Source: Epiperipatus broadwayi (Eukaryota > Animalia > Onychophora). Taken from it: 64,000 bases of DNA. The notes below the pieces were generated by a model that made no database searches, was not told the origin of the DNA, and saw nothing but the letters and a program-made list of their open reading frames with translations. Location of the stretch: NCBI GenBank assembly GCA_028023455.1, contig JAQFVV010000008.1:14074001-14138000 (forward strand), given 5' to 3'. Shown one piece after another: positions 14,440-58,824 of this stretch. The first letter of the stretch is position 1; each line of letters starts with the position of its first letter. Both the position numbers and the translations under genes were made by a program.

Positions 14440-14920
14440 ATGACTCCTGATAAAGAAAATTCTAATCTAAATACAGTAAAAAATGGCGAACATTTCATTA
14501 TTGAAAGTGATCAAATTGATGTCAAAATTGCAGGTGGAATTATTAATAGCGTAGATGATATAAATTCATCTCTTACAGATTCTAGCAACTATGAAGAATG
14601 TGACTCTGACAGTTCCACTGCATCTCAAAGTGATGATGAGTTTCAAAATGATCCATCTGATATGATTTCATTATGTCCTGAATTACAAATTTTACAAGAA
14701 AATAGAGAATTGTTGATTGAGATTTTAGTAAGCAATAAACTACTAGAAAATCGTTCATATTATGATGAAATTATAGATAAAATTATATCAAATAATTTGG
14801 AATATTCATCCAAAGCATACAATTTAAATTTTGAAACTACTCATAATTATTGGTTTGATAAAATTATAAGTATGTTAAAATCTATAAATTTAAATGATTT
14901 TGCAGCTAAACTTGTAAAAG
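14440..14920 (+). CDS. RIG-I-like receptor (RLR) exon A: acidic/Ser-rich N-terminus plus CARD-like death-fold domain
   Basis: Polypyrimidine tract and TTATTAG acceptor directly before ATG 14440; open frame of 160 codons +1 nt; donor AAG|GTAAGT at 14921. The C-terminal ~85 aa (LQILQENRELLIEIL...LL...IIDKII...A...YWFDKIISML..INL.DFAAKL) show a CARD-like helical pattern (pattern recognition, no HMM run). Confidence 0.78.
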
Positions 14921-15229
14921 GTAAGTTTTATTTCAAAATTTTCTTACAACTTTTTTTGTGTGTTTATATATGTATAATTATTTATTGTCCTATAGGGAAT
15001 GTCACTAAAACAAATGAAATAATATCTTATTTGCTTATGGGATAAAACTTCCTGACTTCACATTTTCAAACTCATAAAATTTCTAGTTAGCTATATAACT
15101 TTTTTTAATAAAATACAGGAAATTGTATTCTGTAATTTGGTTACAACTCATATGATAAAGTTAAAAATAGGATATATTAAATGGTATTCAAAGAAGAAAA
15201 AAGTTCAGTGATGACATATCCTGCATTAC

Positions 15230-17937
15230 ATAACCTAAGAGGTCTGCAGTGATCCATAGGAGCAATGGGAAGGGCCCGGGGTTTGGTATCTTGGAGTTAG
15301 GTGACTAAGCTTGCATGACTCAAAATGTACAAAGATGACATCAAAGTATTGTCCATGCAAAAATCACAGCATTACATAGGTAAATCAGACCCTGTATAGT
15401 ATCTAGGGTCTAAGATATAGGCTTGAGGATGGGGCAATTAATAGTCAATCCTGAATGGATGCACTTAAACCAGTTTCTAATTGTTTGTAGTATAGGCGGT
15501 TTCTATCTAGATATAAAAGGGACTAGCCTTAGGGAGGCATAACAATCAACTTTCATGTGGCTTCAAAGATGTAGGGGGGGATTCTGGTCTCCCTAATTTT
15601 TTTCTATATATAAATCAAGCAGACAATCCAGAACATGATTAAAGGTGAGTCAACAATGGGTGAACCATAGCGAAAATAATATGAATGTTGATGACGTATT
15701 TCTGGGATGGATTCATGTAGTATGTTGTCAATAAGTGTTGATAACGTAGCCATTTTGTCTTTTAGCATCAAGGCTATAAGGTCTCTGTAGGATTGAAATG
15801 AAAGGCAGTGGCAGAGGAGATGTAATGAAGTTTCTTCCTCTCTGAGGCATAGGGGGGAGCAAGTGGAATCAATGCTTGAGAAACCTTGGCAGTGTACTAG
15901 GAAATGTTTAGTAGGCAAGGTATTAATGTTAATTTTAAACAGGACGTCAAAGAATTTAGGCTCAAGGAACCATCACTTAAATTTCTTGATTAGAAGATAG
16001 ATGGTTGTTGAGCCAAAGAAGGGTTGATCCTGTGGAAACATCAGAGTGTAGGTTATAATAATTTTTGTAGAGGATGGCTTATTAGGAATAGCAGTGAACT
16101 TTGAGATATGGGATATGAGGGTTGCCAGCCAACTAGTGCTAATAGGGGGAAGGCTTATCTGTGGGAGATATATCTTTAAAGAGTGAGGAGTTATACTGCA
16201 AGAACAGTCTGTAGATGCTGTTGTAGGAGCATTGAAATATAAAGGTACCTATGGAGTGTAGGGACAACCCATAGAACTTTTTGTGTTTCTGTAGGCCTTT
16301 CAAGCCAATAGTTGTACTTTTCTCCCCTCTAATCAGATTGGTGCACAGTTTATGTACTTTCTTGATGAAGGCTTTAGTGAAGTTAATCACTGGGGTGAAG
16401 TAGGATATTTTAGGGAATATTAGTATATTGATGAGGGAGGATTTAGCGAACATGGACATATATACTTTGGAAAGAGAGGGTATAATTTTGTATGTAGATT
16501 GCAGTAGCTTATTTGTACAGATTTCCTCATGGCCATAGTGGATTCAAATATAGGGAAGCCAAAAACTTCTATGGCTTTGCTGTAAATGGCCAGGAATCTT
16601 TTTACCAGAAGATAATTGTCAGGCAGATGACTTGGCCATATTAAATTGGAGGCCGGATTGATTTTGATCGGAAAAACTCCTCAAGCACTGATAGAAGCCT
16701 GGGAATTAGCTTTTTCAGTGGAAGAAAAATAGCTAAGTCATCTATGTAGGTAATGGTGGATTAATGTATTTAATGCTGGGATATGGATGCAGGAAGAGAT
16801 CTCTAAATTTGAAGGAGCAGTGGATTGAGGTGGGTGATGAAGAACAGGGCACTGAAAGGGGAGCCCTGTGGGATGGATGATGTGATGGAGAAGGGGTTCT
16901 TAATGATATTAATGATTCCAGAGGAAAGGTCATGCCTACCAAGCAGGGTTAAAAGGGTGTTGATTATGATAGAATCAAAGGCAGTGGAGATGTCAAGCTG
17001 AACTACTACCGGCTTCGATTGCCTGGAGAATCTGATATGATCAATAATCATTTTAAAAGAGATTGATGGCATCTGCAGTTGAATTGCCCCTTTTTGCAAA
17101 TTGTTATTGCGAAATATGGGGGGGGGTAATTTTGATTTGAAATTTTGTCCTTGATTGTTGACTCAGTGACCTTGACCATCAGAAGGGGTCATTAAGATGG
17201 ACTGCAAATTCTCCAGCGGGGATGGAATTATATTGCGCTTGAGGTATTAATGGCGCCATTGCTATGGGATAAAACCCACTGATGTCTCAGACATTGGAAG
17301 AAAATATAATTAATTAAGTTGTATATGATTGGTATAGAGAATTTGGACAAATGTAACAGGAGGAATCTAGGAATTGCATGAAGCCCCGAATGGATGCTTT
17401 CAGGCATCGAAGTTAACTTGACCAGAATATCTACCTCAGTAATGCCAAGATCTATAGTTGATGAATCCATTGTTGAGTCTTGGCAAGATTCAGGTGTGGG
17501 AGCAGAGAACTTTTTCCTGAAGTATGTAAAAATCTTGAGAAGCATGTTTGATCCTGAATAAAGCTTATCTCCCACAGTAATAGACAATGGAGTGGATTTC
17601 TTGTCTCTATGGCCCAGGGCCCACCTAATGTAGCCCCTGGACCAATTGTGGGATGACTCAAGTAGATTTTTGATTTTTTGGTAGTGGGATACTTTACCAA
17701 AATCAACTGTTTGCTCTTATATTAGGGTTTCAGATTAATGATTGATTCTATAGGGACTGTATTAAGGGGAAGATTTTTTAGGGTGTTATTTAATGATTCG
17801 AATTCCATTAGGAGTGATGACAGGCCTTTATTCCGTGAGGTATAGTTTGAGATGAGGAACATGAAAATTTGAATGAAGGAAAACAAGGCATCCACTAGTG
17901 GCAGCGAAAGGATTTGAATCTTGTGGAAATATATATA
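15230..17937 (-). mobile_element. L1/Tx1-like LINE, 3' part (linker, RT, zf-RVT, 3' UTR); same family as 8975-10607
   Basis: ORF 16803-17099 VVVQLDISTAFDSI...IPQGSPFSALFF; YIDDLA at ~16735-16750; ORF 16139-16459 parallels ORF 9732-10202; C..LCLREEETSLHLLCHC in ORF 15604-15918. Confidence 0.85.
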
Positions 17938-19527: not shown

Positions 19528-21453
19528 GGTACTTGTGTATAATTCAACCGATGACGTTTTTTACTTACCGAATTCCCTTCCGGTAGACATCGACATTTTT
19601 TGCATGACAACGTTGTCATGGTAACCAAGTGACTGGCATGATTAATCCATCAGAGAGTCAATTTTTTTTTTTTTGCACCCGCGACATTTAAAATTCGTAG
19701 AGAGGTTTGGGAAATTTTTTGATTTTTCTGTCTATTGTGATTTTGCTATCCACGGCATCACAGTTACTTTTTTGAGCTGTTAATTCGGGTAAAGTGTTTT
19801 ATTTATCTGTTTATTTTAAATTTACAAAATTTTTTTGTTAATATTTCTACAATTATCAAACTTCTTATTTTATGAAATAATTTTTCTCCGGTAAAGTGTT
19901 TTTTATTTATCTGTTTATTTTAAATTTACAAAAAGTTTTTGTTAATATTTCTACAATTCTGAAACTTACATTGAATTACGTTTAATGTGTAAATAATTTA
20001 TTCTCCGGTAAAGTGTTTCTTATTTATCTGTTTATTTTAAATTTACAAAAATTTTTAGTTAATATTTCTACAATTCTGAAACTTACGTTTAATGTGTAAA
20101 TAATTTTCAATAATTTTTTAAAACAAATTTGGAATATACATTACCAAATGCATGTGATAACAAGGACGCCATTAATGCCAGATTCACATTAATTCAGATA
20201 AAGTGTTTTATTTATTTTAAATTTACAAAAACTTTTTGTTAATATTTCTACATTACGTTTTTAATGTGTAAATAATTTGAAATAATTTTTTAAATCAATT
20301 TTGCAATATGCAGTACGTTTTAAAAATTACCAAATGCATGTAAAAGTGCGGCGTTTTCTGGACGCCATTAATACCAGATTTGCATTAGATCGCGTCTTTT
20401 TTATTTAGGTGTTTATTTAAAATTTACAAAAAGTTTTTGTTAATATTTCTACAATTCTCAAACTTATTTACAAAAAATATTTGTTAATATTTTTACAATT
20501 CTCAAACTTATTTACAAAAAATATTTGTTAATATTTCTACAATTCTCAAACGTTTAATGTGTAAATAATTTTCAATAATTTTTTAAAACAAATTTGGAAT
20601 ATACATTACCAAATGCATGTGATAACAAGGACACCATTAATGCCAAATTCGCATTAATTCGGATAAAGTGTTTTATTTGTTTATTTTAAATTTACAAAAA
20701 CTTTTTGTTAATATTTCTACATTACGTTTTTAATGTGTAAATAATTTGAAATAATTTTTTAAATCAATTTTGCAATATGCAGTACGTTTTTAAAATTACC
20801 AAATGCATGTAAAAGTGCAGCGTTTTCTGGACGCCATTAATACCAGATTTGCATTAGATCGCATCTTTTTTATTTAGGCATTTATTTAAAATTTACAAAA
20901 AGTTTTTGTTAATATTTCTACAATTCTCAAACTTATTTACAAAAAATATTTGTTAATATTTCTACAATTCTCAAACTTACATTGAATTACGTTTTAATTT
21001 TATTTTTAATTTCTGAATTATATCATACAGCTATGAGAGTAATACAATGTCTGATATACGTGTACGCCAGACCTGCGGTCCGACAAAAACATCCAGAGGC
21101 CCCCCCCGCCAATTCCAGCGCTACGCGCTGCTGTATTTTAAAATTGAGAATAATATTTTGACGCATGCATGTACATTTTTTTTTTAGTATTTGCCTGACC
21201 TGCGTCAGATATTTTTTATTTTTGAATATTTTTTAGCATGTGACCTGGATAATTCAACCAATGACATATTACCCTGAAGGCATATCACTCTAATCTTGTG
21301 ATTTTTAACGTACCGTGTTCACGTGATCTGCGGACACATTTTAGCGATTACATGTGTCCGCAGATCACTTGGAGACGTTATCTTAAAAATCGCAAGATTA
21401 GAGTGATATGCCTTCAGGGTAATACGTCATCGGTTGAATTATACACAAGTACC
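19528..21453. mobile_element. Non-autonomous DNA transposon (Merlin-like by TIR) with internal satellite and terminal foldback
   Basis: Perfect 30-bp TIR GGTACTTGTGTATAATTCAACCGATGACGT (19528-19557 / 21424-21453), starting with Merlin-type GGNRM. About seven copies of a 70-130-bp AT-rich motif, plus a ~464-bp higher-order duplication. TSD cannot be assessed because the right flank is garbled. Confidence 0.75.
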
Positions 21454-21529
21454 TTTTTTTTTGGGGAGGGGGTTGTTTTTTTTAGGAAGGATGTTTTTTT
21501 GAATGATTTTCCTAGGGGGTGGTGGAAAA

Positions 21530-21560
<31 letters not shown>

Positions 21561-22264
21561 AAGGAAAAAAAAGAAATTAAAAAGGAAAAGGGAAAAGATT
21601 ATTTATGTTGGTTTTAATATATCTAAAGATTTATTTATTAAAGTTAAGAAATTAGTTAAAATGATTAATAGGAAATATAATGTTTCAATTTGTCCATTTT
21701 ATAAAAAGAAAGCAAATTTAAATTTTTTAATTAATAATAATGGGGATCATAATAGGTTAGACATTGTGAATTCAGTTTATTTGATAAAATGTTTGAATTG
21801 TTTTAGAAAGAATGTAGAAATGACATATATTGGGACTAGTAAAAATAAATTAAAAACTAGATTAAAACAGCATTTAGGTGATAAAAATTCTGCTATTTAC
21901 ATTCATAAGAATAAATTTAAGCATGGGGATTTTGAAATAAAACCTTTGGAATGTATTAAGTCATATAATGAAAGGATAATAAAAGAGGGTGTATACATAG
22001 ATGAAATAAAACCAGAATTAAATAGGATGTTAATAGAAAAAGATAAAAGAAAATAATAGGTTTTTAATTAAAAGTTTTTATATGATATATTTAGATTTTT
22101 AAAAAGAAATTAGTTGTGTTTAAGTTGTGATTGTAATAGGAAAGGGGAGTGAGATAAGGTAAAAAAAAGAAAATTTTGGTTATGAATATATTTTGTAATT
22201 TTTAATTAATTTTTTTTTTTTGGAATATGTGATATTTATTGTATATATATTTTATTTTAGTGTG

Positions 22265-30628: not shown

Positions 30629-33442
30629 CATCATCATCAACCATTATCAATCCACTGCAAGATGAAGGTCTCTCCCAGTTCAATCCATCTTTTCCAATCT
30701 TTAATTTCTCTTCTCCACATCACTCCTGCACACTTTCTTATTTCATCCATCCATCTAACATGTGGTCTCTTTCTGGGTCTTTTATAATCTCTTGGAACCC
30801 AGTTTAAGATTTCAATTGTCCATCTATTATCATCTCTTCTAGCAATACATCCAGCCCAACTCCACTTCAATCTTTTAATTTTTTCAATGAGATCAGTAAC
30901 ACCTGTTTGTTTTCTTACCCATATATTGCATTTTCAATCTCTTCTTGTTACTCCCAACATGCATCTCTCCATACTTCTTTGAGTGATCTGAAGTCTCTGT
31001 ATTGCTCTTCTATTAAGTGTCCAAGTCTCAGATCCATAAGTAAGAACTGGTATTTGTTAAAAACCTTCCTTTTCAAACACATAGGGATACTTCCTTTTAG
31101 TATCAAGTTATTTCTATCAAAAGCACTCCAACCAAGTTTAATTCTATGATTAATTTCATTCATTATGTTTCCATCTGTATTAATATATTTCTACCAAAAG
31201 CACTACAACCAAGTTTAATTCTATGATTAATTTCATCCATTATGTTTCCATCTGTATTAATAATCTGACCAAGGTATTTGTAACTGTTAACTTCTTCTAA
31301 CTCGTCATAATCAATTTTTATTTTCATATTTTGAGAAAATCGATTAAACATTACTTTAGTCTTTTTAACATTTATCTTTAGTCCTACTTTCATCTGATAA
31401 CTCCTGCAACATTTCCTGCAGCTCTAAAGCATTATTTGCAAAAACAACTACATCATCTGCAAAATCTAAATGACTTAAATAATCTCCATTTACTTTCACT
31501 CCTTTAGCTTCCCATTTTAATCCATAAAATACTTCTTGTAGCACTGCTGTAAAATGTTTTGGAGATATGGAGTCACCCTGTCTTACATCCTTTCTTAATG
31601 TTGACTTTCCCAGTATCATTATGTAATCTAATTGTTGCTGTTGCATTTTTATAAATATTTTTTAAAATATGACAATATTCTGGATCTATACCTTGATGAT
31701 CCAATGCTTTAATCACTGAAGAAATGTTTGTAGAATCAAATGCCTTTTCATAATCTACAAATCCAAAACATAATGGCATCTCATATTCATTTGTCCTTTC
31801 TATAACTTCTCTTAATACCTGGATATGATCTACTGTACTAAAACCACATTTAAATCCAGCTTGTTCTCTTGGATGGTGGAAATCCAATGTTCTTTGTAGA
31901 TGAGTTGTAATTATCTTGGTAAAATTTTTATATAAAACTGATAAAAGGCTGATAGGTTCTGTAATTTCTAATATCTTCTTTAACCCCTTTCTTAAATATT
32001 AATATTAATACTGCATTCTTCCAATCATCTGGTACATCTTTATCATTTAGACATTGGTATATAACTTTGCTAAAAAGTTTCTATTTCTTCACCTGCTTCT
32101 TTTAATATATCAATTATAATTCCATCATTATCTGGAGCCTTTCCTTTCTTCATATATTTCATTGCATGTCTCACTTCTTCATTTAAAATTCTGGGCAATT
32201 TAGAAGATGTAACAGATATAGGAGGTACTTGTTCTTTATTACTATATAATTCTTGATAAAAGTCTTCTACCCATTTCATGATGTCATTTCTTTTTTTAGT
32301 AATAATTCCATCTTTTTTTCTTATTGCAGATATAAATTTCCTATCAATACCAAAATGTTATTTTACATTCTTGAGTCTTTTATTTTCTTCTACAGCTTTC
32401 CTTGCTAGTTCACAGTTATACTCTCTTATATCATTTTCAATTCTTTTCCACACCATTTTACAAAATTCAAGATATTCAATCCTTTTTAATGCATCATTTT
32501 TGTATACCTTCATATTCATTCTTTTCTTCATAAATTCTCTAGTCTCAGTTGGTCAATTGTTGCTTTTTTCTACCAGCTATCTTTGTTGCAGTTTTTAAAA
32601 ATGTATCAATTATTTTCATATTAATTTCATTCAAATATCAATCATGTTCAAAATCTACTAGTACTTGAAACCGATTTGTAAGTTCTAATTTAAATTCATT
32701 AGAATGTTTCTGAAGATTAGGAATATCAACTGTAAATATTATTTTTCTTAATAATTTTTGTCTCTCTAGTTTTGCATTAACACGTATCTTACACCTTACT
32801 AATCGATGATCACTTCCTGTGTTAAATTTATTAAGAACATTACAATCTTGAAATATGTATTTTCTGTTAGTCAAAATATAATTCAATTCTACTGTACCTT
32901 CATTTGGATGCTTCCATGTCCATTTCCTTTTAACATTTTTTTTCAAAAAAAGAATTCATAATATAAAGTTTTTCTTTTTCTGCAAACTCCACAAGTCTAT
33001 CTCCTCTCTCATTTCTATTACCATAACCAAAATTACCTACAGCACTTTCATCTTTCATTTGTTTACCAATTCTAGCATTAAAGTCTCCTGTAACATTTTT
33101 AAAATGTTGTTTACTCTGATCAAATGCCTTTTGTATATCCATATAAAAATCTTCTACTACTACTTCATCACTATGAGAACTTGTTGTGGCATAAACCTAA
33201 TTATCTGCATTTGGTATCTGCTATTAAGTTGTATAACTAATCTTGCCACTCTGTCCAATACATCATCAATCTCCATAATGTTGTTCTTCCACTTTTTATT
33301 TATAATGAATCCTACTCCACTTGTAATTTCAATATTTGTGCCTTTGTAATAGAATACATGTTCACTTTTAATTCATCTCTTCACCTTTTCTTCTAACTTC
33401 ATTCGAAATGGTGATGGGCATCTTCACCTTTCCTTCTAACTT
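30629..33442 (-). mobile_element. RTE-clade LINE (endonuclease + RT), slightly 5'-truncated, with (TGA)n tail and ~70-bp TSD
   Basis: TGDFNARIG, SDHRLV, ELTNRFQVL, KAPDNDGI, QAGFKCGFSTVDHI, FVDYEKAFD, VRQGDSISPK, LDFADDVV, YKYLGQII, FILQWIDNG* then GATGATGAT. Direct repeats at 30559-30628 and 33443-33511; internal ~77-bp duplication near 31130-31260. Confidence 0.95.
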
Positions 33443-35306: not shown

Positions 35307-37280
35307 AGTTGTATTTATTTATTGGACTATTTTTATCATCTACTATAAGTACTGAAAGTCTTTAGAAAAATTTAACTTTATTTAAATACTGTATTTCAAA
35401 TACATTCAACTGTTAGTAATAGCACACAAGTTAGGATTTGCACAACATTTTGAGAGGTATTATTCTCCTTTCTTCTTCTAGTGTTGCTGGCTTGACCAGT
35501 GCAATACTAGCATGAGAATTGAACCTGGACCTTTAGATTCTTGAATATTGAAATTTTAAGATAACACTCTAACAAACTGAGTCATCCTGCCAAAGGCAAC
35601 AGTCAGTAGAAATTTCATATGCTTATCTATGAGATTCCACTTGATTTTTCCAATTTTTCTTAAGAGCAAATTGATTAGTGGCTTCCATACATTATGTATA
35701 ATCACACTATGTTGACTTGTTTTGCTGTTCACCATGGTCATGGGAGCAGCTTCTTTAGATTTTCTTCTTTTTATCTTCTCCAATATTTTTGTATTTTCCT
35801 AATTAAACATATGTTAATTGGTACATACATGGTCTGCTATCTTAGACACATCTGTTTTCTCTCTTCTAATTATCAGTTTGTGTTTTTTCAAGTGCTTTTC
35901 AATGGGATAATTGGTCTCACCAATATATATGTTCTTCCACATTCACATGGTATTTCATATCCACCTAAAGTTTGTCTTCTCTTTGTAGATGATACATTTG
36001 TTGTATGGACACATGGTGAAACACTCCTACAAACTTCTTGGAAACACATCAACAACATAACACCTTCAATTAAATTCATAATGGAATCAAAGCAAGAACA
36101 AAAATTGGTATTTTTAGGTGCTTGTGATAAGACTCATTCATGGAAAAATCAAAACTACAGTTTACAGAAAACCCACACATACAGGAAAATACTTAGCCTA
36201 TGCATCCAATCACACCAGAAACACTAAACATGGATTTATACTATGACTATGGAACAAAGCAAAAGAAGTTTGTTCAGAAACCAGTGATTTGAAAAAAGAA
36301 AAGATCTATATAGAACAAACCCTTATGAAAAAGTTATCCATCAGCTGTGATCAAGAAAAACTTAAATAGGCAATAAAAAGAACCATCAAAAGCGAAAACA
36401 TGGAGAGTTAAGGGTCATGTGAAAGTCTGAGTTCAAATCCCTTATATATTACACTATATATGTGCAGGTGAGTGTAAGCCTGTACAGTGTATTAAATTAA
36501 AAATAGAAGACAAATTGAAGAAAATCTGCAAGCAGTATAACATCAGAACGATTTTCCAGAGCCATGCCACATTATGAGAAATTTTAACATCTACAAAGTC
36601 TAAACTTGAAATGCTGAAAAGAAAAACTACATCTCTGAAATACCATGTGACTGTGGAAGAACATATATTGGTGAGACCAGTTATTCCATTGAAAAGTGCT
36701 TGCAAGAACACAAAGTGACGATTACAAAAGAAAACAGATGTGACTAAGGTAGCAGACTATGTATGTATCAATGAACATATGTTCAATTGGGAAAATGCAA
36801 AGGTATTGGATAGAAAAGAAAAGGTATAATGAATAAAATTTAAAGAAGGTGTTCACATGACAATGGCGAACAATCCCATAAATCAACCTAGGGTGACTAT
36901 ACATAATGTATAGAAACCACTAATCAACTTTGTTCTTAAGAAAAAGTGGAGAAATCAGGAGGAATTTTATACATAGATGTATGAAATTTCTACTGATTGT
37001 TGCCTTAGGCAGGATAGCCCAGATGGTTAGAGAGTTACCTTAAAATTCAATATTCAAGAATCTAAGGGTCCAGATTTATTTCCCATGCTAGTAATGGCCG
37101 TAGTCAGGCCAGCAACACCTGAAGAAGAGGGAAGACTAATATCTCTCGAAATGGTGTGCATATAGTAATCTGTATGAGATTACTAACAGTTGAATGTATT
37201 GGAATATTTAAATAAAGTTAAATTTTTCTAAAGACATTCAGTACTTAGATGATGAAAATAATTTCATATAAATACAACTA
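35307..37280 (+). mobile_element. Penelope-like element (RT C-terminus + GIY-YIG + 3' terminal repeat) with a 5' inverted copy
   Basis: FVDDTFVVWTHGE...PSIKFIME...FLG (PLE RT); EIPCDCGRTYIGETSY...LQEH (GIY-YIG). ~35307-35980 is an inverted copy of ~36570-37280. Sits between the Gypsy protease and RT regions. Confidence 0.88.
37116..37159 (+). ncRNA. Degenerate minimal type I hammerhead ribozyme in the PLE terminal repeat (inverted copy at 35440-35484, minus)
   Basis: CAC CUGAAGA A GAGGGA agacuaaua UCUCUC GAAA UGGU GUG: core and 6-bp stem II intact; stem III decayed from an inferred AACGUU. Confidence 0.55.
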
Positions 37281-40050
37281 AAATACCATCAATACAAATA
37301 TGCAGGAAAAGAGAGCTACCTCTTTATATCATGAAGCATGAGCTGGTTTAAACCATTGGGAATTTGGATTGATAGTAAATAAAGCACACCCAATTGCTAT
37401 AGATCATATAGGTCCCATTTACATTAAGCTCAAAAGTAGAACCAGTTCACAAGCTGGTTAAAAGAGGTATATTAACTTTGATAAAAAGGCTGTCTTGGCC
37501 CTCTCTAGTTATGGTTATTTTAAAGTCAGATGGGACTATCCACCAATGTTAAGATTACTGAGTAATGCTCAATAATTACATTAATAAGAAAGTTTATTGG
37601 GCACCTAATGTGCAAGAGATAATAGAGTTGTTGCAGAAAGCAAAATTTTTCTGCTAACATTGACTTGAAATCCATGTTGCACTCATCTATAGTTACTTAA
37701 GTGCAATAAATTTTTTTATAGAATCACAATTGCACCAAATCTATTTCAGGCTAAAATGGATAATTTATTTCAGGATGTGGAAGATGTTATTCCTTATCTT
37801 AATGATATTTTATTATTTGCTGAAACGAAGTGAAGGATCAGCATGCATATTTAATGTCTGCAAGAAATTGGATAAAACTAGTGTGAGATTAAATGTTGTT
37901 AAATATATTTGATCCACCATTAAAAATTAAATTTCTATTACATGTAATTAATGATAAAGGAAAGCATTCTAATCCAGAAAAGGTGAGAATAGTAAAAAAA
38001 TGCTGCAAAATCAATTTTCATGTATAATTTCTTTTCGGGAATTTTCTGAAAAGTGCATATTACTACATTGTATCATCTATTAAGAAAGAGATAGTGGAAA
38101 TGAAATGCAGAGCTCAAAAGTGCTTTCAACAGGGCCATGGTTCTGTTGACTGTGATCAGATACTTGTCCATTATTGTAAGGATTAAGAACTCATTGTTAC
38201 AATTGATGTCTCTGAATAAGGATTAGAGATGATAATATTATATCTCTGTTATGGAGGTGAATCTCTATAATAACTTCTGCTTCAAAGAACATTGAGTGCT
38301 GTAAAAAGGAACTACAGTCAGCTTGATAAAAATACTTTGGCAATAATATATGCTGTGAAAGAATTCCAGCAGTACGTTTATGGATGTGAGTTTAAAATTT
38401 TACAGATCGCCATGTGTTCATAGGTGTACTTGGAAATATGAAGAAAACTCGTGAACATGCTAGTCAAAGAATGGTCTACTGTTTAACATAATAGCGATAT
38501 ATGATTTCAAGATGTAAAAAAAATAGCCATTAGGTTGCACTATCAAGATTACCAGATACATGTGAATTGAAGAATAAAATTATAGAGGTCAATTATGTAA
38601 TCTCATGAAAAACAATATGTGAAACAGCACAGTAGTAGCTAAATGGACTAAAAGAGATGTTGGCTAGCAAACTTTAGAGAAATGGATTAAACATGGTTGG
38701 CCTAACAAGTGCCCTATATGGCAAAATCTATTTTGAAAAGCATGTGAGAGCCTGCCTATGTGTAATAATTATGTCCTAATGACTGAACATATACTTAAAC
38801 CAACTGAAGACAGAAAACAAGTACTAGTTTTACTTCATAAAGGGCACCTGGGAATACTGAGAATGAAAGAGTTAGCATGGTAATGCATATGGAGGCTTTT
38901 ATATGTGTCCAGGAGTTGAGCAGACATTTAAACATTGCAGAAACTGCCAATTCATCACTAAGTTGCTGCCAAGAAAACTTTTCTTGGTTTAAAACCCCCT
39001 AACTATGACAGAGACTATTTGAATTATGCTGGTCCATTCAATGATTGCATTTTCTGGTAGCTATAGATTTATATTCTAATAAGTATAAAATTGTTAAAAG
39101 CACAAATGTGGATAATACCATTAAAGCTTTGAAAGAAATATTTTTGTACCTTGGATATCCCCAAACTATATTGTCCAATAATAGAGCTGGTTTAGTGTCT
39201 ACATTATCCCAAAACTTTTTGGTTACTAAGAGGATGCATCATATATTCACACTGCCTAGTCAATTTGCCTAGCTGAAAAAGCAGTGCAGCACTTTAAGCC
39301 CACCTTAAATAATAGTTCATATAAAGATATTAGTGAAGCTTTAACTGATGCAATGTTTTATTAGCATTTCACTGCCTGTATATTTGCTAAAAGGACACCA
39401 AATGAATTGCTAATGTTTTGGAAGTCTCTAACACAGTTCAGTAGTAGTACCTACTAAGAATAAATCAAAACATATTTGGATAAAATTGGTGACACTATAT
39501 CGATATACGATATTCTTGGGGGACGGGGGGTGGGGTTCCTAGAATGAATTCTAAAAGTTATTCAAAGAAAATTAAGAATAGTTCGGATGTCTAATGGAAA
39601 TGAATGAGAAGACATACTAATCATTTGAGAGTGTCAAACCAAGTTATTAGAGATGATAAACATCAGTACACATCCTTTCTATGTTTAATGAAGAGATTAC
39701 ATTAATAAAAAAGGACAGTGCAGACACAGCACAAGAGTCACCAGGCATATAGTTATCAAGTGAGAAACAGTTAAAATTGATTGAGCTGAAATGAATAATT
39801 AATTTAGTGAGCCAGAAATTTTACCAATGGGAACGCCTGCTTCAAATACAGCCTCAATAAGAAGATATAGAAAGGAGTCACATAAAGAAGAAAGGTCTAT
39901 ACTTCTGCAGACCCCAAAGATTACAGAATTACATTTGTGACTAAATGATAATTTTCTAGTATGAGAGGAGGAGTTTGAACTGTTTGTGATAATATAAATG
40001 TAAATATGTGAGGATATGAATATACATGTATATATAGCAGATTATAAAAT

Positions 40051-42035: not shown

Positions 42036-42173
42036 ATGTTAAAAGAAGAAAACGTCCCATCAACATAAAATATTCACAAATGCCCCGTCCCATCAATATA
42101 AAATATTCACATGTGAACATTACACAAGGGTCCAATAATAATGTCATTACTGGAAACTTTGATAAATGCACAG
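42036..42173 (+). CDS. RLR exon B: 138-bp phase 1-1 exon with an 11-aa tandem duplication and RHIM/amyloid-like motif
   Basis: Acceptor TTGCAG at 42030-42035; donor CAG|GTAAAG at 42174; in frame with exons A and C. Encodes DVKRRKRPINIKYSQMPRPINIKYSHVNITQGSNNNVITGNFDKCT. Confidence 0.68.
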
Positions 42174-42639
42174 GTAAAGTAAAAACTGTAATTAAACATT
42201 ATTTTGTAGAAAAAAATTTTTTCCTTTATTTCAGAATTTAGTGATCATTTAATTTTTTTTTTATTATCATGTTGATGTTTTCAGATAAAATATTTTTATG
42301 TATATAGATATGTCTTTGAATTAGTTGGCCATAGCTAGCTTATCTAATCACTCACAATTGCTTGAAAATGTTATATTCTTACATGGAATAAAAACAAGGA
42401 TGGAAATACACTAAGACTATCATTTTTTGGCACTTGGTAACTTTTATAAATAATTTCTTCTGGTTCACTATTTCTTTTAGGTACTGTTGTAGAGGACTTT
42501 GTCTCATAGTGGACTATTTAAAATCTAAACAAAGGCAAAACTCTCCATACAGTAGTGCCACCCTGTGCCAACCAGAGTAATCAATGGATGCCAGAAGGCT
42601 TGTGCATAAAATCCCTATCCAGTGCCTACTCATTCAATA

Positions 42640-42679
42640 TCCTGACTAGTTTCTGGCTTGTGGCCATCATCAGTGAGGA
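42640..42679 (-). ncRNA. Type I hammerhead ribozyme, unit 1 (stem I damaged)
   Basis: UCCUCA CUGAUGA UGGC CACAA GCCA GAAA CUA GUC AGGAUA: core intact; a short deletion after the cleavage site disrupts proximal stem I. Confidence 0.7.
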
Positions 42680-43073
42680 GCCTTGGATCTAAGAGCACTG
42701 CACCTAGATCTTAGGATCTAATGCAATCCTCCAGCAGCCATCTTTTAACTCTACTTTACTACAAAACTATGAGAATGAAATTGAAAACACTATAATATTT
42801 TCCATCTAAGCTCAATAGCTTATATAGTCATATGGGTCTGAACTCAATTCAGCACCCATACATTTTGGTGTCTTTGGCTCTTAAACAACCATAGCCACCA
42901 CTATCCTATTAGGCAGGATTGGTGTTAAACCACTAAACATCACAGGATTACCATCTCATACTAGCACATAATTGTTGTAAACAAAGGCAAAACTCTCCAT
43001 ACAGTAGTGCCAACCAGAGTAATCAATGGATGCCAGAAGGCTTGTGCATAAAATCCCTATCCAGTGCCTACTC

Positions 43074-43132
43074 ATCCAATATCCCCAGACTAGTTTCTGG
43101 CATGTGGCCATCATCAGTGAGGAGCCTTGGAT
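43074..43132 (-). ncRNA. Type I hammerhead ribozyme, unit 2 (intact)
   Basis: AUCCAA GGC UCCUCA CUGAUGA UGGC CACAU GCCA GAAA CUA GUC UGGGGA UA UUGGAU: stem I is 6 bp + internal loop + 6 bp; stem II is 4 bp; stem III is the palindrome ACUAGU; GUC cleavage triplet at 43088-43090. Confidence 0.88.
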
Positions 43133-43654
43133 CTGAGAGCACCTAGATCTTAGGATCTAATGCAACCCTCCAGCAGCCACCTTTTAACTCTACTTTACTA
43201 CAAAACTATGAGGATGAAATTGAAAACACAATAATATTTTCAATCTAAGCTCAATAGCTTATATAATCATATGGGTCTGAACTCAATTCAGCACCCATAC
43301 ATTTTGGTGTCTTTGGCTCTTAAATAACCATAGCCACCACTATCCTATTAGGCAGGATTGGGGTTAAACCACTAAACATCACATGATCACCATCTCATAC
43401 TAGCACATAATTGTTGTAAACAAAGGCAAAACTCTCCATACAGTAGTGCCACCCTGTGCCAACCAGAGTAATCAATGGATGCCAGAAGGCTTGTGCATTT
43501 CAGACCCATATGACTATATAAGCTATTGAGCTTAGATTGAAAATATTATTGTGTTTTCAATTTCATTCTCATAGTTTAGTAGTAAAGTAGAGTTAAAAGG
43601 TGGCTGCTGGAGGGTTGCATTAGATCCTAAGATCTAGGTTCAGTGCTCTCAGAA

Positions 43655-43709
43655 CCAAGGCTCCTCACTGATGATGACCACAAGCCAGAAACTAGTCTGG
43701 GGATATTGG
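43655..43709 (+). ncRNA. Type I hammerhead ribozyme, inverted unit (sense to the host gene; one stem II mismatch)
   Basis: CCAA GGC UCCUCA CUGAUGA UGAC CACAA GCCA GAAA CUA GUC UGGGGA UA UUGG. Confidence 0.8.
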
Positions 43710-46080
43710 ATGAGTAGGCACTGGATAGGGATTTTATGCACAAGCTTTCTGGCATCCATTGATTACTCTGGTTGGCACGGGGTGGCACTACTGTATGGAG
43801 AGTTTTGCCTTTGTTTACAACAATTATGTGCTAGTATGAGATGGTGATCATGTGATATTTAAAATCTAATTCGTCTTTTATTTTACTTACATATTATTAT
43901 AGAAATATATTGGAATTACATATCATTTACAATGCAGATGAGATTCTAAACATTGTACTATATCTGCTGAAAGAGATATAACTGGATATGTAGGCTAAAA
44001 ATTAAACACACACTATTAGCATAATGTTAGATAGGGAAGTATTTCTTAAAGATAACACCTTGCCTTATTCATAAGAATAATGTAAATTTATAAGTAAATA
44101 AATAGCAGTTATTTATAATAGCAAACTAATTATATAAATTTCTTGGGATTAATGAATGAAAGATAACTTATAATAGATGTGATTGTAACATATGCAATTG
44201 AAAAAAAGAAGGTGGACAGAATATCTCTTTGAATGGCCATTCATGATAATATAATAAAGATGTTTCTAGGTTCAAGTCATACATTTTTTAATGTTCCTAA
44301 TTCTTGATTAAGAACTACTAATGCTCTTCTTTCACTAATAAATAAAATCAAATTCATTTATTGGTATGAATGTTGAAATATGTCTTAATGATCTGTTGTC
44401 ATTTATTTCTGCTTGCCATATATTTAAAATTGTTATACAGAATTAATGGTCATTATATCATTTTGCCCAGGTGTCTGCAAATAGAAATATATAAATTATG
44501 ATTCTAAATGTCTTCCAGTTAAATATGTGATAATGGTATGCACGAAATACATTTGGAATATAAACTTAAATCCTGCTTTGCTATTTGAACCATGAGCATG
44601 TGGAAAGCATTTTTATATTGCAAGCACATATTAAAATAAGTAATCAGGCTTAAATCTCCTTTCAAACACAAGTTTTTTTTTATTAGACAATAAATTAAAT
44701 TTTTCAAGTTAAAAAAATATGAGGATTAACATTTACATATTGAGATTATGATAGTCAACAAACTATTAACAATAATAATAATGGTCTGAGAAAAATTATT
44801 TACTTTTTTTCTTAATTGTAATGTGTTAAATAAAGAACTTATAGCTTATGCATACATATGACTTATTGGTTTAAGAAGCTATTATTTTAGTCGATATTTA
44901 AAACTTGTATATACATGCATATACTCTAATATCTAATTCTTATATACACAATCTCTTTTTTCCTAGGAGGAAAAAATATAAAATCATCAATAATAATATT
45001 TGTTTCTATACACTCATTATTATCATTGTAATAATGCAAAATTAATCATAATTACAATTCTAATTATAGTATTATTTTATACTTAAAAAAATAAAAGAAA
45101 ATCACATTTTGTTAATATTGAAATGTAATAGTAGTCTTCATATCATTCCTCAAAAAGTTTGTGTTTTCTTAAAATATCCATTGGACTCCAAGAATTCTAT
45201 TATAGGCAGCTTGGAAATTTTTATTTTAAAACATTCATATTTTTATTCCTATATTAAAGTTAAAGCATTATTTGAATATTCAGTTGAAGTTTCTTTGGTT
45301 TTTTTTTATTACAGATCTGGTATATTATTTATTTTAAATATGAGATATTGGCATATTTTTCTTTTAAAATATAAGCCAGCACTATGTTGCATATATTTTA
45401 TTGGCATTTCTTTCCTATAAAAAATTATAATGGAGTTTATTATCTAACTATGCATTTACATATACATTGCTGTAAGTGTATTCTATTTTCTCAATGATGT
45501 GATAATTTTTTTCTTACAAGTGATTTGATTTCTTTGGGTTATCCATAAGGTCCATCAATAAAATAATATAATTTGACAAATTAAAATAATACAACCTAAT
45601 AAAAATGTTGCTTTAGAATTTTACATTTTTTAAAAGTAATTTTTATATAAATTTTCTCAGATGAAAAATATTGACCAAAAACAATTTCTCTTTTTTCAGC
45701 CAATTAGATATGAATGAATGCATTAAAAATTAATTTCTTAATACATTTTAACATGATTAAAAAATGTTTGTTATAATTAAAAAAATGAAACCAAGATATA
45801 TTTTTAAAATTTTTTCATTATTTTAATAAAGATCATTATTTTATTTTATAAAATATTAAAATAAATGACTCAATATATATGCATGTATTCATACTCTTCT
45901 ATCTTTCATCTGTAAACATACCTAAAAGCTATCTAAACTATTAATGATAAAGTTTGTAAATCTGTGCTGTAGATTAAGAAACCAGTGAAAATGATTATAT
46001 TTGTTTAGTTATCTATTAACTACTTATTATAAGTGTTATAATGAATATGAATTCAATATGTGTGTTCACAAAAATATTTC

Positions 46081-49034: not shown

Positions 49035-52000
49035 ACAATTTTGACTGTCCTGAAGTCTTCATCAAAGCTACAGCATTTAAACATATTCTATATACTGTAC
49101 TAGTTGAAAATGTATGTCCATCCAACAAGACTTAGATTCTGAACAAAAGTACCCCATATCCAATCATGCCCAAGATACAAACGTCAGGAGTAATCATGAA
49201 TTCTAACCTATTTGCCCATTCCCCAAATCTATAACACTATGGACAACACCTGCGGTGATACAATGTAAATTCTTTATTTCTGGGCCCGACTTGAAGTTTT
49301 ATTATTTACTGGTTATTATCATCTGACATTATATATGCTTGTGTTGAGATACAATGTATGTCTACAAATAAAATCGATTCTCTATGTATAACTCACTTCA
49401 TTCAGATTCGAATCTAAATTCATCAAATTCTGTGCTTTAAGCCAAGTTTAATATTCATTAAGTGAATGATGAAAACTTAATGAATCATGAAAGTGTAATC
49501 ATAACTCAAATAATTCTAAAAAAAACTTTTCTATTGGAAGTATAATTTAAAGTTCATAAGATTCAAACTACTGATTAACAAAAGTATAATATTGATAGTG
49601 AGGGGGTAGCATAAATTTAACTATATATATATTTCTTTGATATTTAATATTTATTGTTTTAATCAAAAGGCTTATTCAAAGAACATAATAATTAAAAATA
49701 CTTGGATTACTAATGAGGCATTAAATTTTATTCAGATTTTAAAGCTGTTATACATATACCAGAATATTTTGTTGTACTCTCATCCTCTTTTACTAAAGCA
49801 CTCCATTAAGCATAAAATATATATTGATGTTGGTTGCTTCTAATGATTCAATCTGATAAATTTTTCAAATAGTTAATATGTTTTACTTGTCTTCTGTAAG
49901 ACGTTTGAACTACTCTTAACTGTTTTGATATAATTCTAATTATCATTCTGACAAACCATTTTCTTTTCAAAACATCATGTATCCAAACATCATCACCAGT
50001 TTTGAAATTTTCTTTGTCCAAATAGCTTTGCTTTGATACTTTCTTAATAGGCATTAACACTGACAACTGTGTTTGGAATTTTTGATCCATTAACACTTAA
50101 GCCAGTATCCTCTTAGTAGATGTGCAAGAGAAAAAATTCTTGTAATATAAAGCTTTGCTAATGTCTTTGTATGAAGTTTTATTTAATGTAATTTTTAATT
50201 GCTGGACAGCTTTTTCAGCTAGAGCTAAGCCATTAGATAATATAGAGAGTATTAATATATGATGTATCCCCTTAATATCCAAAAAGTCTTTGAATAGCAT
50301 ATACACAAAAACAGCTCCATTATTAGAAAGTATAATTTTGGGGTATCCTTGGTATGAAAATATTTCATTCAAAGCTTTAACAGTATTGTCTGTGTTTGTG
50401 CATTTGACAATTTTATATTCTTTTCATACAGGGTATGAATCAATAGCTATCAGAAAAATGTAAACATTAAATGGACCAGTGTGGTCTATGTGGAATCTAT
50501 CCATGGTTGGGTTATTTTAATCCAAGGCTCTAGTTTTTTTGGCAGCAACTTAGCAGTAGATTGATAGTCACTTATCATTTAACTATCTGCTCAATCTCAT
50601 GGTTCATGTTTGATCCCATACATAATACCACACCAAGTCCATCCTCACTATTCCTAGCTGTCTTCATTGTAATAAGGCTAACACTTGTTTTGTGTTTCAG
50701 TGGGTATAAGTACAAGGTCCATCATGAGAATACAGTAATTACATATCAACTGCCTCTCACATGCATTCCAAATGGATTTTGACTGATAATTTAATCATTT
50801 ACTAGGCCAACCATGTTTAATCCAATTTTTGTAAAGTTTGATAGTCAGCATCTTTGTTAGTCCATAGTTACCTCCACAATCTTACTCACTGTTTTTGCAC
50901 ATAGCTGATAGTCTCAATTGTGTGTCCATATGGCCAATTCCTTTACTGGATTTATCTATTAGCTCAAAATCATATGCTTCTAATATATTGATCCAGTGAA
51001 TCATTCTATGGTTAGTATGTTCCAGAATTGTCTTTCCACTTCCAATTTCCATTAATGGATGGTGTTCAGTATACATTTTAAACTTGCATCCATAAATGTA
51101 CTGGTGGAATTATCTCCAAAGCTTTCTTTTCAAGTTGACTAATTTTGTTCTGCAGCAATCAAGGTTCTGGAGTTGTAAACTATAGAGCATTCACCTCCAT
51201 GACAGCAATGTAATATTTCCAGCCATGTGTCATAGTCCAAGTTTCAGTTGTAACAATGACTTCCTGTTACAATAATAGATAAATATTTGGGTGGAAGCTA
51301 ATAGATCCTTTGCTTTGTTGGCAGTAATTTGATGTTCGGCATTCTATTTTCTAACATTATCCATTTTTTAAAGCTGCTATAATGGTGTGCACATATGCAA
51401 TCTTTCTTTCAAAAAACTCAAAGAAATTAAGTAGGTTTAGAAATGCCTGCAAATCTTAGACATTCTTTGGTTTTGCAGCATTTTTAACTGTTTTCATCTT
51501 TCCTTTAGCATTAACTATATGTCCTAGAAACTTGATTTTAATAGTGGACTAAATATATTTTGGAACATTTAATTTCACACCAATTTTATCCAGCGTTGCA
51601 TAGACTTCAAGTACACATTTTTCTACCTTGTTTTTTTTTCACAGCTATTAAAATGTCATCAACGTAAGAAATAGCCCCTTTTATACTTTAAAACAAACTA
51701 TCCATTTTTATCTGAAGCAGATTTGATGCATAGACTAATATATTGCATTTGAAGAACTTTAGGTGAGTACATATAGTTAATAGTTGAGCTGTTCCATTAC
51801 TGATGGGAATTGGATAAAATACGGATTTTAGTTTGATTTTAGCAAAAAAATTTACTTTCTGCAACAATGCTATTGTATCCTGCACACTTAATACTAGTTA
51901 AGCTTCATTGTTTATGTAATTATTGAGCAGTACACAATAATCTGTGCATTCCATAAGGATTTAATATAATCACATTTGGAGTGGCCTTCAGTAAGAATTA

Positions 52001-54384: not shown

Positions 54385-54389
54385 TGTAT

Positions 54390-54596
54390 TAGTAATAATT
54401 TGCCATTAAGCTAATGCACATGTGCTTTGTGGATTTTTAACTATAAATGAATAAGTACTCTCACTTCCAAACACAAGATAAAGTCATTCTATCTTTTCAC
54501 AAAGACTTTATCTTTTGTTTGGAAGTGAGAGTATTCATTTATAGTTAAAAAATCCACAAACCACATGTGCATTAGCTTAATGGATAATTATTACTA
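54390..54596. repeat. ~205-bp imperfect hairpin (MITE-like foldback)
   Basis: tagtaataatt..ccattaagctaatgcacatgtg..tgtggattttt..ctcacttccaaa..aagataaagtc is mirrored by gactttatctt..tttggaagtgag..atccaca..cacatgtgcattagcttaatgg..aattattacta. Confidence 0.85.
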
Positions 54597-55473: not shown

Positions 55474-55647
55474 CAAAAGACCCCTGGTATTTATTTATTA
55501 TAGTTATAAACTTTAACATTTATTCTACTACTCATTGGGTCTAAACCGCCAGTATTTTAAAAAATTCAGTATGGCGGTTTAGACCCAATGAGTAGTAGAA
55601 TAAATGTTAAAGTTTATAACTATAATAAATAAATACCAGGTCTTTTG
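55474..55647. repeat. Near-perfect hairpin, ~75-bp arms with a ~20-nt loop
   Basis: cctggtatttatttattatag...ggtctaaaccgcca is mirrored exactly by tggcggtttagacc...aataaataccagg. Confidence 0.95.
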
Positions 55648-55775
55648 TCTTTTCTATAATTGATAAGAATAGTCATGAATCATAAATATATAGATTATAT
55701 ATAATTAAAATAGTTTTGAACTTTTTTTAATGTTATGTTGATATGTACATATAACATAAATATTTAATATTTTAG

Positions 55776-55977
55776 TAATGGGTTCAAGTGGTGAAGAAAA
55801 GATGGTACTAAAAAATTCACACTCTCACAATAACAAAGAACCATCAAGTGGTGATCGGAATTCTAATTTGCCAGAATATTCTGCTAAAGAAACTGATAGT
55901 GAACAAACCAGTAGTTCAAAAAGTTTTGCTGATTTTTTTAATAATAGTGAAATTGGTGGAATTCAAGTAACAGAAAA
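55776..55977 (+). CDS. RLR exon C: low-complexity Ser/Glu/Lys/Asn linker
   Basis: TTTTAG acceptor at 55770-55775; phase 1 in; donor AAA|GTAAGT at 55978; phase 2 out, matching exon D. Confidence 0.72.
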
Positions 55978-57958
55978 GTAAGTTTATATTTTCAAATTAT
56001 TATTGATTTATATTATTATACTTTATAATTTTATAGGATAATGTTCTGTTTATAATTTTTATTTATTGTTCTATGAAAATTGTTATAAATAAGTGATAAA
56101 GTTTTTAAATTTTAAAGGAAACATTTATTTATTTGATATGATTGATAGTAATGGGCTTTCATACTAAAATATTTATGATTTATTTACAAAAACTAAATAA
56201 AATATTATTCGAAATATGATTAAAAATAGACATTTTATTAAGGGCTTAATTGATACTTAGCTCTCTGACTGATGATATGATAGATATTGGCATATCTTTT
56301 TTATTTACTTCTTCCACGAATAATTGAAATAGTCTTGTTTTCATTTCATGATTGTATAATCATTATAATAATTGTTTTCTATAAATTTTATTTTTCATTG
56401 TTTGTTTATCACATATATAATTATGTAAAAATATATATATCTTCTTGCTTTTATTTTTTATTCTAATGTGCTTTTTATTTGCTTCATGTGTGTTGAATAC
56501 TTAAAAAATAGCTTTAGTCTTCAGCAATTGAGAGAAATTGGCACTTCATTTTTGTGTAATTAACATAATATCACTATAAGAGAAATATAAACAATTTGGT
56601 GGATATATTTTTTTAAGAAGCAATTCACACGTGACGATTATCATTTTGTATTGTTAAAGTAGTCATATTTTTGAGGCATGAAATTATTTAAAGGAATGTG
56701 TTGTATACATGAATAAATATATTCTTTCATTAAAAAACTTTTTGATAATGATCATATAATTAATAACAATTAAAAGTGAACTGACCCCTGCTTGGCAGGA
56801 AAATACAATAATTATGGATCTTCATAAGCAATAGAAAGATTTAAAGAGAAATTATTAATAGTAATAAAAACTTAAAAATGATTGATGGACGAAAACTTAA
56901 ACAGATATAATTATTTTTTCTGATCATATTTATTTTAGATTATATATATAATGAAAAGCATGTAGATCTGAAAAAAATAACAAATATAATATTCTATTAA
57001 ATCAATTTATATGATGATAATAATAATAATAATAATAGTAATTTAAGGCTTGAACATTTAAGCACCAGAAGTAAGATAACTGACTGCTATTCATGCCACT
57101 TTAGCTCCAGTTTGTTACTCTATTATTATACTAAATCACATAAAGTAATTATATATTAATCATTTTTTGTGAGTATATACTAGAATTTAGATATTGATAA
57201 TGTAGCCATTCTATCAAATTGGATATATAATGAAATATTCAAATTGATTGGATTAAAATATCTTTGTAATTTTGGAAACAGAAGTTCTGATAGAATTCTT
57301 GCTTTCCAAATTATTGGAATCGTTTTACGAATATATGGGTTCTTGAAAATCTTTTATCTGTTCTTAAAGATGCTTCTATTGTTTCAATTTATAAAATAAA
57401 AAAGAAAAGATTCAATCATTACTATGAAATATCATAGTTTTCATTATGGGAAAAATATTTTTAAGGATCTCTTTAGTTAGGGTTCTCTTCATTTGTAGAT
57501 GATTAGTTACCATAGCTTCCACACTGCTGTACAAAATCAGAAAGCACTATAAATATAGCTTTTATTGTCAAATAAATGCAGGAAAGGTGTCAAAAACAAA
57601 GGTACAATTTTTATTTGTTTTTGTTGATTTGATCAATGCATTTGTTTGTTGAGAAAGTTAGGTTTATAGCAACTTTTGAAAGTGTTTTGTGATATTGATT
57701 GAAATTGGCTAGTTGTTTACCAAATTTTATTTATATTACAACACAGTATTTACTTAATGGAATGAGAGGAAACATTACTGCTAGTAGAAAATCTATGGCA
57801 TTTGAAGTCATGTTATTTTTTTTTTTGAAATTTTGTCATTCCCAATTTATGAATTAATGCTAATGAATGAATGATAAATGAGTAACAATTTAGATATATA
57901 TTTTTATAAAATTAATTTTAAGTCTTTATTTTTCTTTTCATATTTTTTTTTTTTACAG

Positions 57959-58824
57959 TTTGATTTTAAGACCATATCAGAAAGAATTAGTCAATAAGGC
58001 ATTAACTGTTAAAAATTGTATCATTTGTGCCCCAACTAATTCTGGAAAAACTATAGTTGCCACATACCTTATAAAGATTCATTTATTACAAGCATCTGGT
58101 CAAAAAGTTGGCTTTGTAGTACCTAAGCGAATATTAATTAACCAGCAAGCTATACTTTTAAGTACATATTTAGGTATTTGGAAAATTAGAAAACGAGCTG
58201 GATCTGGTGCTAAATTAGCATCAAGACAAAAGCCATTAGATAGTTTGATCAAAGAAAGTGATGTCATTATAATGACTGCTGATATTTTAAAAAATGGCTT
58301 AATTAAAAAAACTGCAAAATTTTCAGATTTTACTTTATTAGTATTTGATGAATGTCATCATTGCATGGATGGCCATTCATATAATGAAATTATGGCAATG
58401 TATTTAGAAGAAAAAACAAATAATCCTACAGGAGAAAGACCTTCTATTATTGGCTTGACAGCTAGTCCTGCATCAAAAGGTAAAACAGAAGATGCAGTAA
58501 TAAGAAATAAAATATTTCTTCTCTGTGCTAATCTTGATGCGCAGGCTTTGGTAACTGTCATTAATAATGAGGAATCATTGAATGAATCCACTTCTGATGC
58601 ACATCGAGAATACAAGTCTAGAGAACAAAGACCTAATAATCCCTTTGTTAAAGAAATTTTTAAATTAATGGCTGAAATAGAAAAAAATTGCAATTTTACA
58701 TCTACTATAGAAAGAAGGTTGCCACAATATCTTTCACAGATCTCTGAAATAATAAGTAAAGCAAAAGAAGAAGAAGATCGTAAAAAAGTTCATTGTCTTG
58801 AAATGCTAAAAGTTTATCATGAAG
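57959..58824 (+). CDS. RLR exon D: DExD/H helicase Hel1 domain and start of Hel2i (RIG-I/MDA5-like)
   Basis: Long polypyrimidine tract and TACAG acceptor; LRPYQKEL (Q motif), APTNSGKT (Walker A), FVVPKRILINQQ (Ia), TADILKN (Ib), VFDECHH (II), IGLTASP (III), and LCANLDA typical of RIG-I/MDA5; donor AAG|GTAAGT at 58825. Confidence 0.95.

Follow-up and report, generated by a model that had tools for sequence, protein, structure and literature searches.

A stretch of 64,000 nucleotides (nt) from the onychophoran Epiperipatus broadwayi (contig JAQFVV010000008.1 of assembly GCA_028023455.1, positions 14,074,001 to 14,138,000 of the forward strand; hereafter the window) raises the question of how a RIG-I-like receptor (RLR) gene begins in this animal, and of which signalling modules, if any, precede its helicase. 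An earlier note, made from the sequence alone, described four exons between positions 14440 and 58824 that would encode a sensor with an acidic region, one CARD-like fold, a RHIM-like motif and a helicase. The window is AT-rich, with 22-39% G + C in 2-kb bins, and of its 28 open reading frames (ORFs) of at least 90 amino acids (aa) two are neither transposon-like nor low-complexity, at 14440-15045 and 57960-58847, both on the plus strand. On balance, the analysis favours the window as the 5′ part of one large, transposon-filled RLR gene, in which an expressed N-terminal exon (A) and a linker exon (C), perhaps with a further exon between them (B), precede a helicase exon (D).

The helicase exon

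By sequence comparison, exon D (57959-58824) is an exon for the Hel1 ATPase core of an RLR and, probably, for the start of its Hel2i insertion domain. The Pfam families DEAD (8.7e-22) and ResIII (6e-18), named as a check in the earlier note, were both matched, and the RLR insertion-domain family RIG-I_C scored slightly below its cut-off (2.7e-4; 21.3 bits against 23.2). Searched against all PDB chains, the exon is closest to MDA5 (3.5e-37), RIG-I (1.1e-34) and LGP2 (2.4e-33), followed by the nematode Dicer-related helicase DRH (1.8e-25), Dicer (1.3e-15) and FANCM (6.3e-10). The alignment with MDA5 spans all 288 residues of the exon and reaches Hel2i, of which just the first ~70 residues are encoded inside the window. 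The helicase motifs are intact, namely Q (RPYQ), I (PTNSGKT), II (DECH) and III (TAS); the Asn in motif I is present in 12 of 142 relatives.

An exhaustive search of 1.84 billion representative proteins identified 3389 relatives of exon D with identities of up to ~45%, the best lying at 37-45%, and a word search gave no relative closer than these. In a FastTree phylogeny of 152 Hel1 segments the exon falls, on its own branch of length 1.53, into a clade of 11 with support 0.97, which also holds RLRs of hemichordates (Saccoglossus, Ptychodera, Glandiceps), amphioxus (Branchiostoma) and a brachiopod (Lingula). The order of the PDB E-values and this clade bear out the earlier identification of an RLR helicase, and a grouping with Dicer or FANCM appeared in neither the tree nor the PDB ranking. 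Judged from these comparisons, the helicase is that of an RLR, neither a Dicer nor a FANCM, and the gene belongs to the MDA5/LGP2-like kind of invertebrates.

The earlier note proposed that the Hel2 and C-terminal domain (CTD) exons be located downstream. A tblastn search with ~160 relatives found no RLR exon in 58825-64000, the end of the window, and with all relatives no further RLR exon was found upstream or downstream within the window; the remaining part of Hel2i, along with Hel2 and the CTD, would have to be encoded past position 64000. The intron that follows exon D holds one related feature:

59178-59400 (+), decayed partial copy of exon D positions 58108-58334 (a pseudo-exon), 85% identical over 227 nt with a broken frame, ~350 nt downstream of D

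From its sequence this copy reads as a local partial duplication.

The proposed joining of the exons and the RNA over exon A

The four exons of the model are as follows:

14440-14920 (+), exon A: 481 nt, acceptor tttattag, ATG at base 1, donor gtaagt
42036-42173 (+), exon B, a candidate symmetric cassette: 138 nt, phase 1-1, acceptor ttgcag, donor gtaaag
55776-55977 (+), exon C: 202 nt, acceptor ttttag (ag at 55774-55775), donor gtaagt at 55978
57959-58824 (+), exon D: 866 nt, acceptor tttacag, donor gtaagt

Added together (481 + 138 + 202 + 866 = 1687 nt), they give a single open frame of 562 codons plus one base, in which the phases match throughout: A closes in phase 1, B both opens and closes in phase 1, C opens in 1 and closes in 2, and D supplies the one base still needed. 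The coordinates, AG acceptors, GT donors and codon arithmetic were all reproduced, and the four stretches do fit together in frame, as the earlier note stated. This agreement carries little weight, since each junction fits by chance in about one case in three, and it does not touch the inclusion of exon B, because the length of B is a multiple of three and A joins C in frame with or without it. The donors of A, C and D are GTAAGT, and the GTAAAG of B is the weakest of the four. For exon C, the donor at 55978 alone keeps the helicase frame of exon D, and an alternative donor at 55967 leads to a stop.

Codon usage was scored as log-odds, trained on exons A and D versus the non-coding frames of the window, and a scan of the plus strand found no coding-like stretch in the window besides the exons of the model. 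Exon C, a Ser/Glu/Gly-rich linker that begins two bases before an ATG at 55778, scores +16.0 and ranks fourth of 336 stop-free stretches, after D, A and one low-complexity repeat; on these grounds it is probably a real exon. A low-complexity purine/pyrimidine tract at 10492-10935, which translates into Arg/Lys/Glu or Pro/Ser runs in several frames, has a falsely high codon-usage score.

Exon B scores -11.9, unlike A, C and D. It encodes a basic, Asn-rich peptide that is rich in Asn, Gly, Ile and Val near its end, and contains an in-frame 33-nt tandem duplication (42053-42078 and 42086-42111); no repeat copy of the exon occurs elsewhere within the window. A stricter filter, with donor GT[AG]AG, excluded B itself, and the criteria were loosened afterwards to admit it: pyrimidines had to make up at least 70% of the acceptor, the donor had to read GTRA, the length had to be a multiple of three and no shorter than 90 nt, and the stretch had to be open in the phase needed. 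With this post-hoc filter, no non-transposon symmetric candidate other than B turns up between A and C. From its sequence it is a possible cassette exon, with the balance tilting against inclusion.

Evidence from RNA comes from three small, contig-only runs (X1, X2 and X3) of one study of related organisms, whose contigs were compared with positions 11200-15500. In a 558-nt contig of X3, bases 233-454 fit 14440-14661 and the preceding 232 bases fit nowhere in the region compared; a 229-nt contig of X3 fits 14750-14920 and continues with 50 unlike bases; and a contig of X1 fits 14438-14616 at 99% after four unlike bases. No contig of any run covers 13936-14367 or 14944-15087, and in X1 exon A is covered at a depth of 9-39. 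The pieces over exon A have no insertions or deletions at ~10% divergence, set beside 2-7 gaps in several neighbouring non-coding or transposon pieces, and the exon lies in a 201-codon stop-free stretch within DNA of 28% G + C. Because the contig fits end exactly at the predicted acceptor and donor, without entering gtaagt, they indicate spliced RNA: exon A is a real, spliced and expressed exon with borders at 14440 and 14920.

The transcript does not begin with exon A; at least one exon lies upstream, since the X3 contig carries 232 further upstream bases. The part of the transcript upstream of A may be 5′ untranslated region (UTR) or additional coding sequence, and the ATG at 14440 is a reasonable start because no coding-like plus-strand stretch lies upstream in the window. 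The caution in the earlier note that additional exons could be missed was thus well placed, both for this upstream exon and for those of the remainder of Hel2i, Hel2 and the CTD. A further contig of X1 over 14759-14883 has 87% identity and a depth above that of the 99% contig of the same run at the start of exon A, which suggests that the exon A module has an expressed paralogue at another place in the genome.

We infer that A joins C, with B perhaps included in some transcripts, and that C joins D, giving an N-terminal region of ~228-274 residues before the helicase. This linkage is drawn from the fit of the phases, the codon usage of C, which resembles that of A and D, an N-terminal length near the norm of the family, and a weak CARD match in exon A.

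The N-terminal region: the proposed CARD and RHIM, and rival readings

The exons were searched one by one, and exon A was folded by itself. The acidic N-terminal region described earlier is confirmed, with 18 Asp/Glu versus 3 Lys/Arg in the first 75 residues of exon A, which are also rich in Ser, Thr and Asn. AlphaFold predicts almost no structure in these residues, and they are probably disordered. For residues ~76-160, AlphaFold predicts, from the single sequence and with low confidence, five to six helices. A hidden Markov model (HMM) of CARDs was built from 123 examples in the N-termini of RLR relatives, and hhalign against this set pairs exon A residues 136-157 weakly with CARD helices 5-6 over 22 columns (probability 23%, score 18.9), a score that 0 of 60 shuffles reach (shuffle maximum 13.4). 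The pattern of this segment is W-F...I...L...F-A, and the same segment was matched in an earlier hhalign run with eight CARDs.

The earlier note treated a single CARD as unusual. The 123-CARD profile was run on the 114 relatives whose N-terminus is 80 aa or longer: 45 show two CARDs, 24 show one, 3 show three and 42 show none. Their N-terminal region before the helicase has a median of 295 aa, compared with 228-274 aa here. In lophotrochozoans, eleven N-terminal types of RLR have been described, including a single CARD (‘C type’), Death, DED, IG, SAM and CASc, and domain-less N-termini are also listed for invertebrate RLRs (PMC8998645). Members of the sister clade with a measured N-terminus mostly have a single CARD at residues ~22-110, then 150-300 residues and then the helicase. 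A single or unrecognisable N-terminal module is a known state for an RLR, since both the sister clade and the published types show it, and the supposed peculiarity falls away.

The closest parallel is with the single-CARD invertebrate RLRs of this sister clade (for example Saccoglossus XP_002737903.1, Glandiceps XP_077993196.1, Branchiostoma XP_019624542.1 and Lingula XP_013415815.1, IFIH1/DHX58-like), which share the Hel1/Hel2i clade at support 0.97 and an arrangement of one N-terminal module, a long linker and the helicase. Their N-termini are 248-409 aa long, against 228-274 aa here, and their CARDs reach 24-65 bits at residues ~22-110, whereas the candidate module here reaches 4 bits at ~76-160, after a 75-residue acidic leader. 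Vertebrate MDA5 (IFIH1) is the best match among solved structures (3.5e-37 over all of exon D), with the DECH box and Q motif common to both; it differs in its two clear tandem CARDs in Pfam, compared with at most one, barely recognisable, here, and in an identity of ~31-37%. LGP2 (DHX58) also matches in the helicase (2.4e-33), and the layout here would be LGP2-like if translation started in exon C. However, LGP2 is without CARDs or an N-terminal extension, and A and C would add 228 residues if joined.

The second module proposed in the earlier note was a RHIM-like motif. RHIMs have a core tetrad, I/V-Q-I/V/L/C-G, within ~18 beta-prone residues, and are known from RIPK1, RIPK3, ZBP1 and TRIF, and as cryptic RHIMs in Drosophila. 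A regular-expression search for [IV]Q[IVLC]G found the tetrad in none of exons A, B, C and D, the nearest strings being V-I-T-G in B and I-Q-V-T in C. Exons B and C match no Pfam family and no PDB chain by phmmer, both at E<=10, and the PDB includes RHIM fibril chains; a literature search found no link between RLRs and RHIMs. The likeness to RHIM proteins is confined to an Asn/Gly/Ile/Val-rich stretch in B and the I-Q-V-T of C, the defining tetrad is missing, and neither a profile match nor a PDB match was found. The motif was placed in an exon of non-coding-like codon usage, and the RHIM half of the proposed signalling through both death-fold and RHIM assemblies finds no backing; as far as the sequence goes, nothing here indicates RHIM or amyloid signalling.

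Several results weigh against one RLR gene that runs from exon A, with its possible CARD, to exon D. Among the contigs compared over 11200-15500, no read or contig joins A to B, C or D; unrelated exons would match the frame at both junctions about one time in nine; the own ATG of exon C makes a CARD-less RLR starting there possible; and tblastn left the remaining helicase and CTD exons unfound in 58825-64000. Exon A has no Pfam match at E<=10, including CARD and CARD_2, no PDB match by phmmer, no usable Atlas match, no relatives in a word search (proteins of 88-280 aa) and nothing below E 0.1 in blastp against the N-termini of 150 RLR relatives. Its score against the 123-CARD HMM is 4.2 bits, which 17 of 500 shuffles reach and which lies within the noise of the 1326 six-frame pieces of the window. 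Confidence in the AlphaFold models is low (pLDDT 39 for the whole of exon A and 54 for residues 70-160). Fold searches with them, by Foldseek in the PDB and by VIA-align, brought up generic helical bundles and no death fold, results from poor models that neither support nor exclude one.

The ‘one CARD-like fold’ of the earlier note is consequently reduced to the 22-column hhalign match, with Pfam, PDB, Atlas and AlphaFold lending it no confident support. Whether the helical module is a death fold stands at roughly even chances, and from its sequence the ~85-residue module may be a very diverged CARD. A second CARD exon, also looked for, did not appear: the CARD HMM gave noise and no CARD-like piece across all six frames of the window, exons A-C have no Pfam CARD or CARD_2 match, and at most one weak CARD candidate, and no tandem CARDs, was found in them.

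The 41 kb of transposon-rich DNA between A and C, together with the lack of a joining transcript among the contigs compared, would fit two genes, in which exon A belongs to an unrelated upstream gene and the RLR starts at the ATG at 55778, with ~66 residues before an LGP2-like helicase and no signalling domain. That exon C begins two bases before this ATG points the same way, as do the failure to detect any likeness between exon A and the RLR N-termini of 150 relatives and the 42 of 114 relatives without a detectable CARD. Nevertheless, the donor phase of A fits the acceptor of C (by chance one in three), the joined N-terminal length matches the family norm, the weak match of exon A to CARD helices 5-6 comes from a profile built solely from RLR CARDs, and no other coding-like plus-strand exon lies between A and C into which an upstream gene could continue. 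We regard two genes as unlikely, though as an alternative to be taken seriously. It is a good deal harder to see exon D as what is left of a decaying or rearranged RLR copy that has lost its downstream exons and has unrelated exons upstream. The 5.2 kb after D without a helicase or CTD exon, the decayed partial duplicate 350 nt downstream, the very long branch (1.53) and a best identity of 37-45% among 1.8 billion representative proteins would all suit such a remnant, but a dead gene would not be expected to keep 288 codons open in DNA where stops make up ~8% of random codons, the ATPase motifs are all intact, both splice sites of D are strong, and an intron of more than 5 kb after D is unremarkable at a locus with introns of 2 to 41 kb. 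A remnant is therefore judged improbable.

The model of the earlier note, one RLR in which a lone CARD and, in B, an amyloid motif of RHIM type would allow dual signalling, draws on the frame and usable splice sites of B, its place as sole non-transposon symmetric candidate of at least 90 nt (by post-hoc criteria), its Asn/Gly/Ile/Val-rich end, and the end of exon C in I-Q-V-T, three quarters of a RHIM core. Against these stand the absence of the tetrad from every exon, the blank Pfam and PDB searches at E<=10 despite the RHIM fibril chains in the PDB, the codon usage of B and its donor, the weakest of the four, and the status of B as only a candidate for inclusion in the mRNA; translations of AT-rich DNA, moreover, commonly yield short Asn/Gly/Ile/Val-rich strings. 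We consider this model very improbable. Hardly to be expected, too, is a bolder combination, in which the exon A module, with its apparent expressed same-species paralogue at 87%, is a new lineage-restricted signalling domain grafted on to an RLR and B, as an alternative exon, supplies a prion-like or amyloid element by which the mode of assembly is switched; if true, this RLR would be without precedent in its link to an amyloid-type motif.

Genomic setting and place in the RLR family

The window is full of transposon remains, and has these other features:

21298-22056 (+), 9330-10202 (-), 15604-17706 (-), 30637-33142 (-), 35694-39272 (+) and 49848-51076 (-), a Penelope-like GIY-YIG ORF, three non-LTR (long terminal repeat) reverse-transcriptase remnants, and LTR/pol or integrase pieces (transposon remains in introns)
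61900-63270, tandem repeats, open in several frames on both strands, with ORFs of 80-133 aa that contain repeated peptide units
13216-13985 (strand not assigned), a non-coding stretch, transcribed or conserved, upstream of exon A, with a depth in all three runs similar to that of exon A

For the Penelope-like ORF, the Atlas gave just a hint of Ctenophora/Cnidaria, and a word search with a transposon ORF of the window returned no match. The repeats at 61900-63270 are probably a satellite rather than a gene. At 42526-43861, units of ~440 nt that are 95-100% alike are arrayed in direct and inverted orientation, with a further piece at ~59040-59140. Rfam returned nothing at gathering thresholds for the whole window, and nothing at E<=1 for 42300-44000, which includes this array.

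Upstream of exon A, each of the three runs has a contig depth in the hundreds to thousands over 13108-13148 and 11344-12351, and many loose ends there; these are short repeat elements that are highly expressed or high-copy. Within the stretch at 13216-13985 no ORF was found; a contig of X2 aligns with 13771-13985 at 92.5% identity without gaps over 215 nt, and an AATAAA occurs near 13812. This stretch may belong to a neighbouring gene, as its 3′ UTR, or to the RLR gene itself, as a 5′ exon.

If exons A, C and D do form one RLR gene, which we take as the likelier account, its N-terminus would consist of an acidic, disordered leader, a fast-evolving helical module of ~85 residues and a Ser/Glu-rich linker. 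If this RLR works like those with solved structures, its helicase and the CTD encoded beyond the window would bind viral double-stranded RNA, and ATP-dependent assembly on that RNA would bring the N-terminal modules together for the recruitment of an adaptor.

The N-terminal variety of lophotrochozoan RLRs has been ascribed to domain grafting and exonization (PMC8998645), and the evidence from this locus agrees with what is published on such N-terminal grafting in invertebrate RLRs. The gene is an ordinary addition to a family already known for variable N-termini. It adds a very divergent member from the AT-rich genome of a poorly sampled animal, for whose Hel1 no identity above 45% was found among 1.8 billion representative proteins, and a further example of fast evolution at the signalling end of an RLR next to a constant helicase core. 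Should the module of exon A turn out to recruit adaptors as a domain of a new type, this would have consequences for the understanding of antiviral signalling as it was organised before CARD filaments of the MAVS type.

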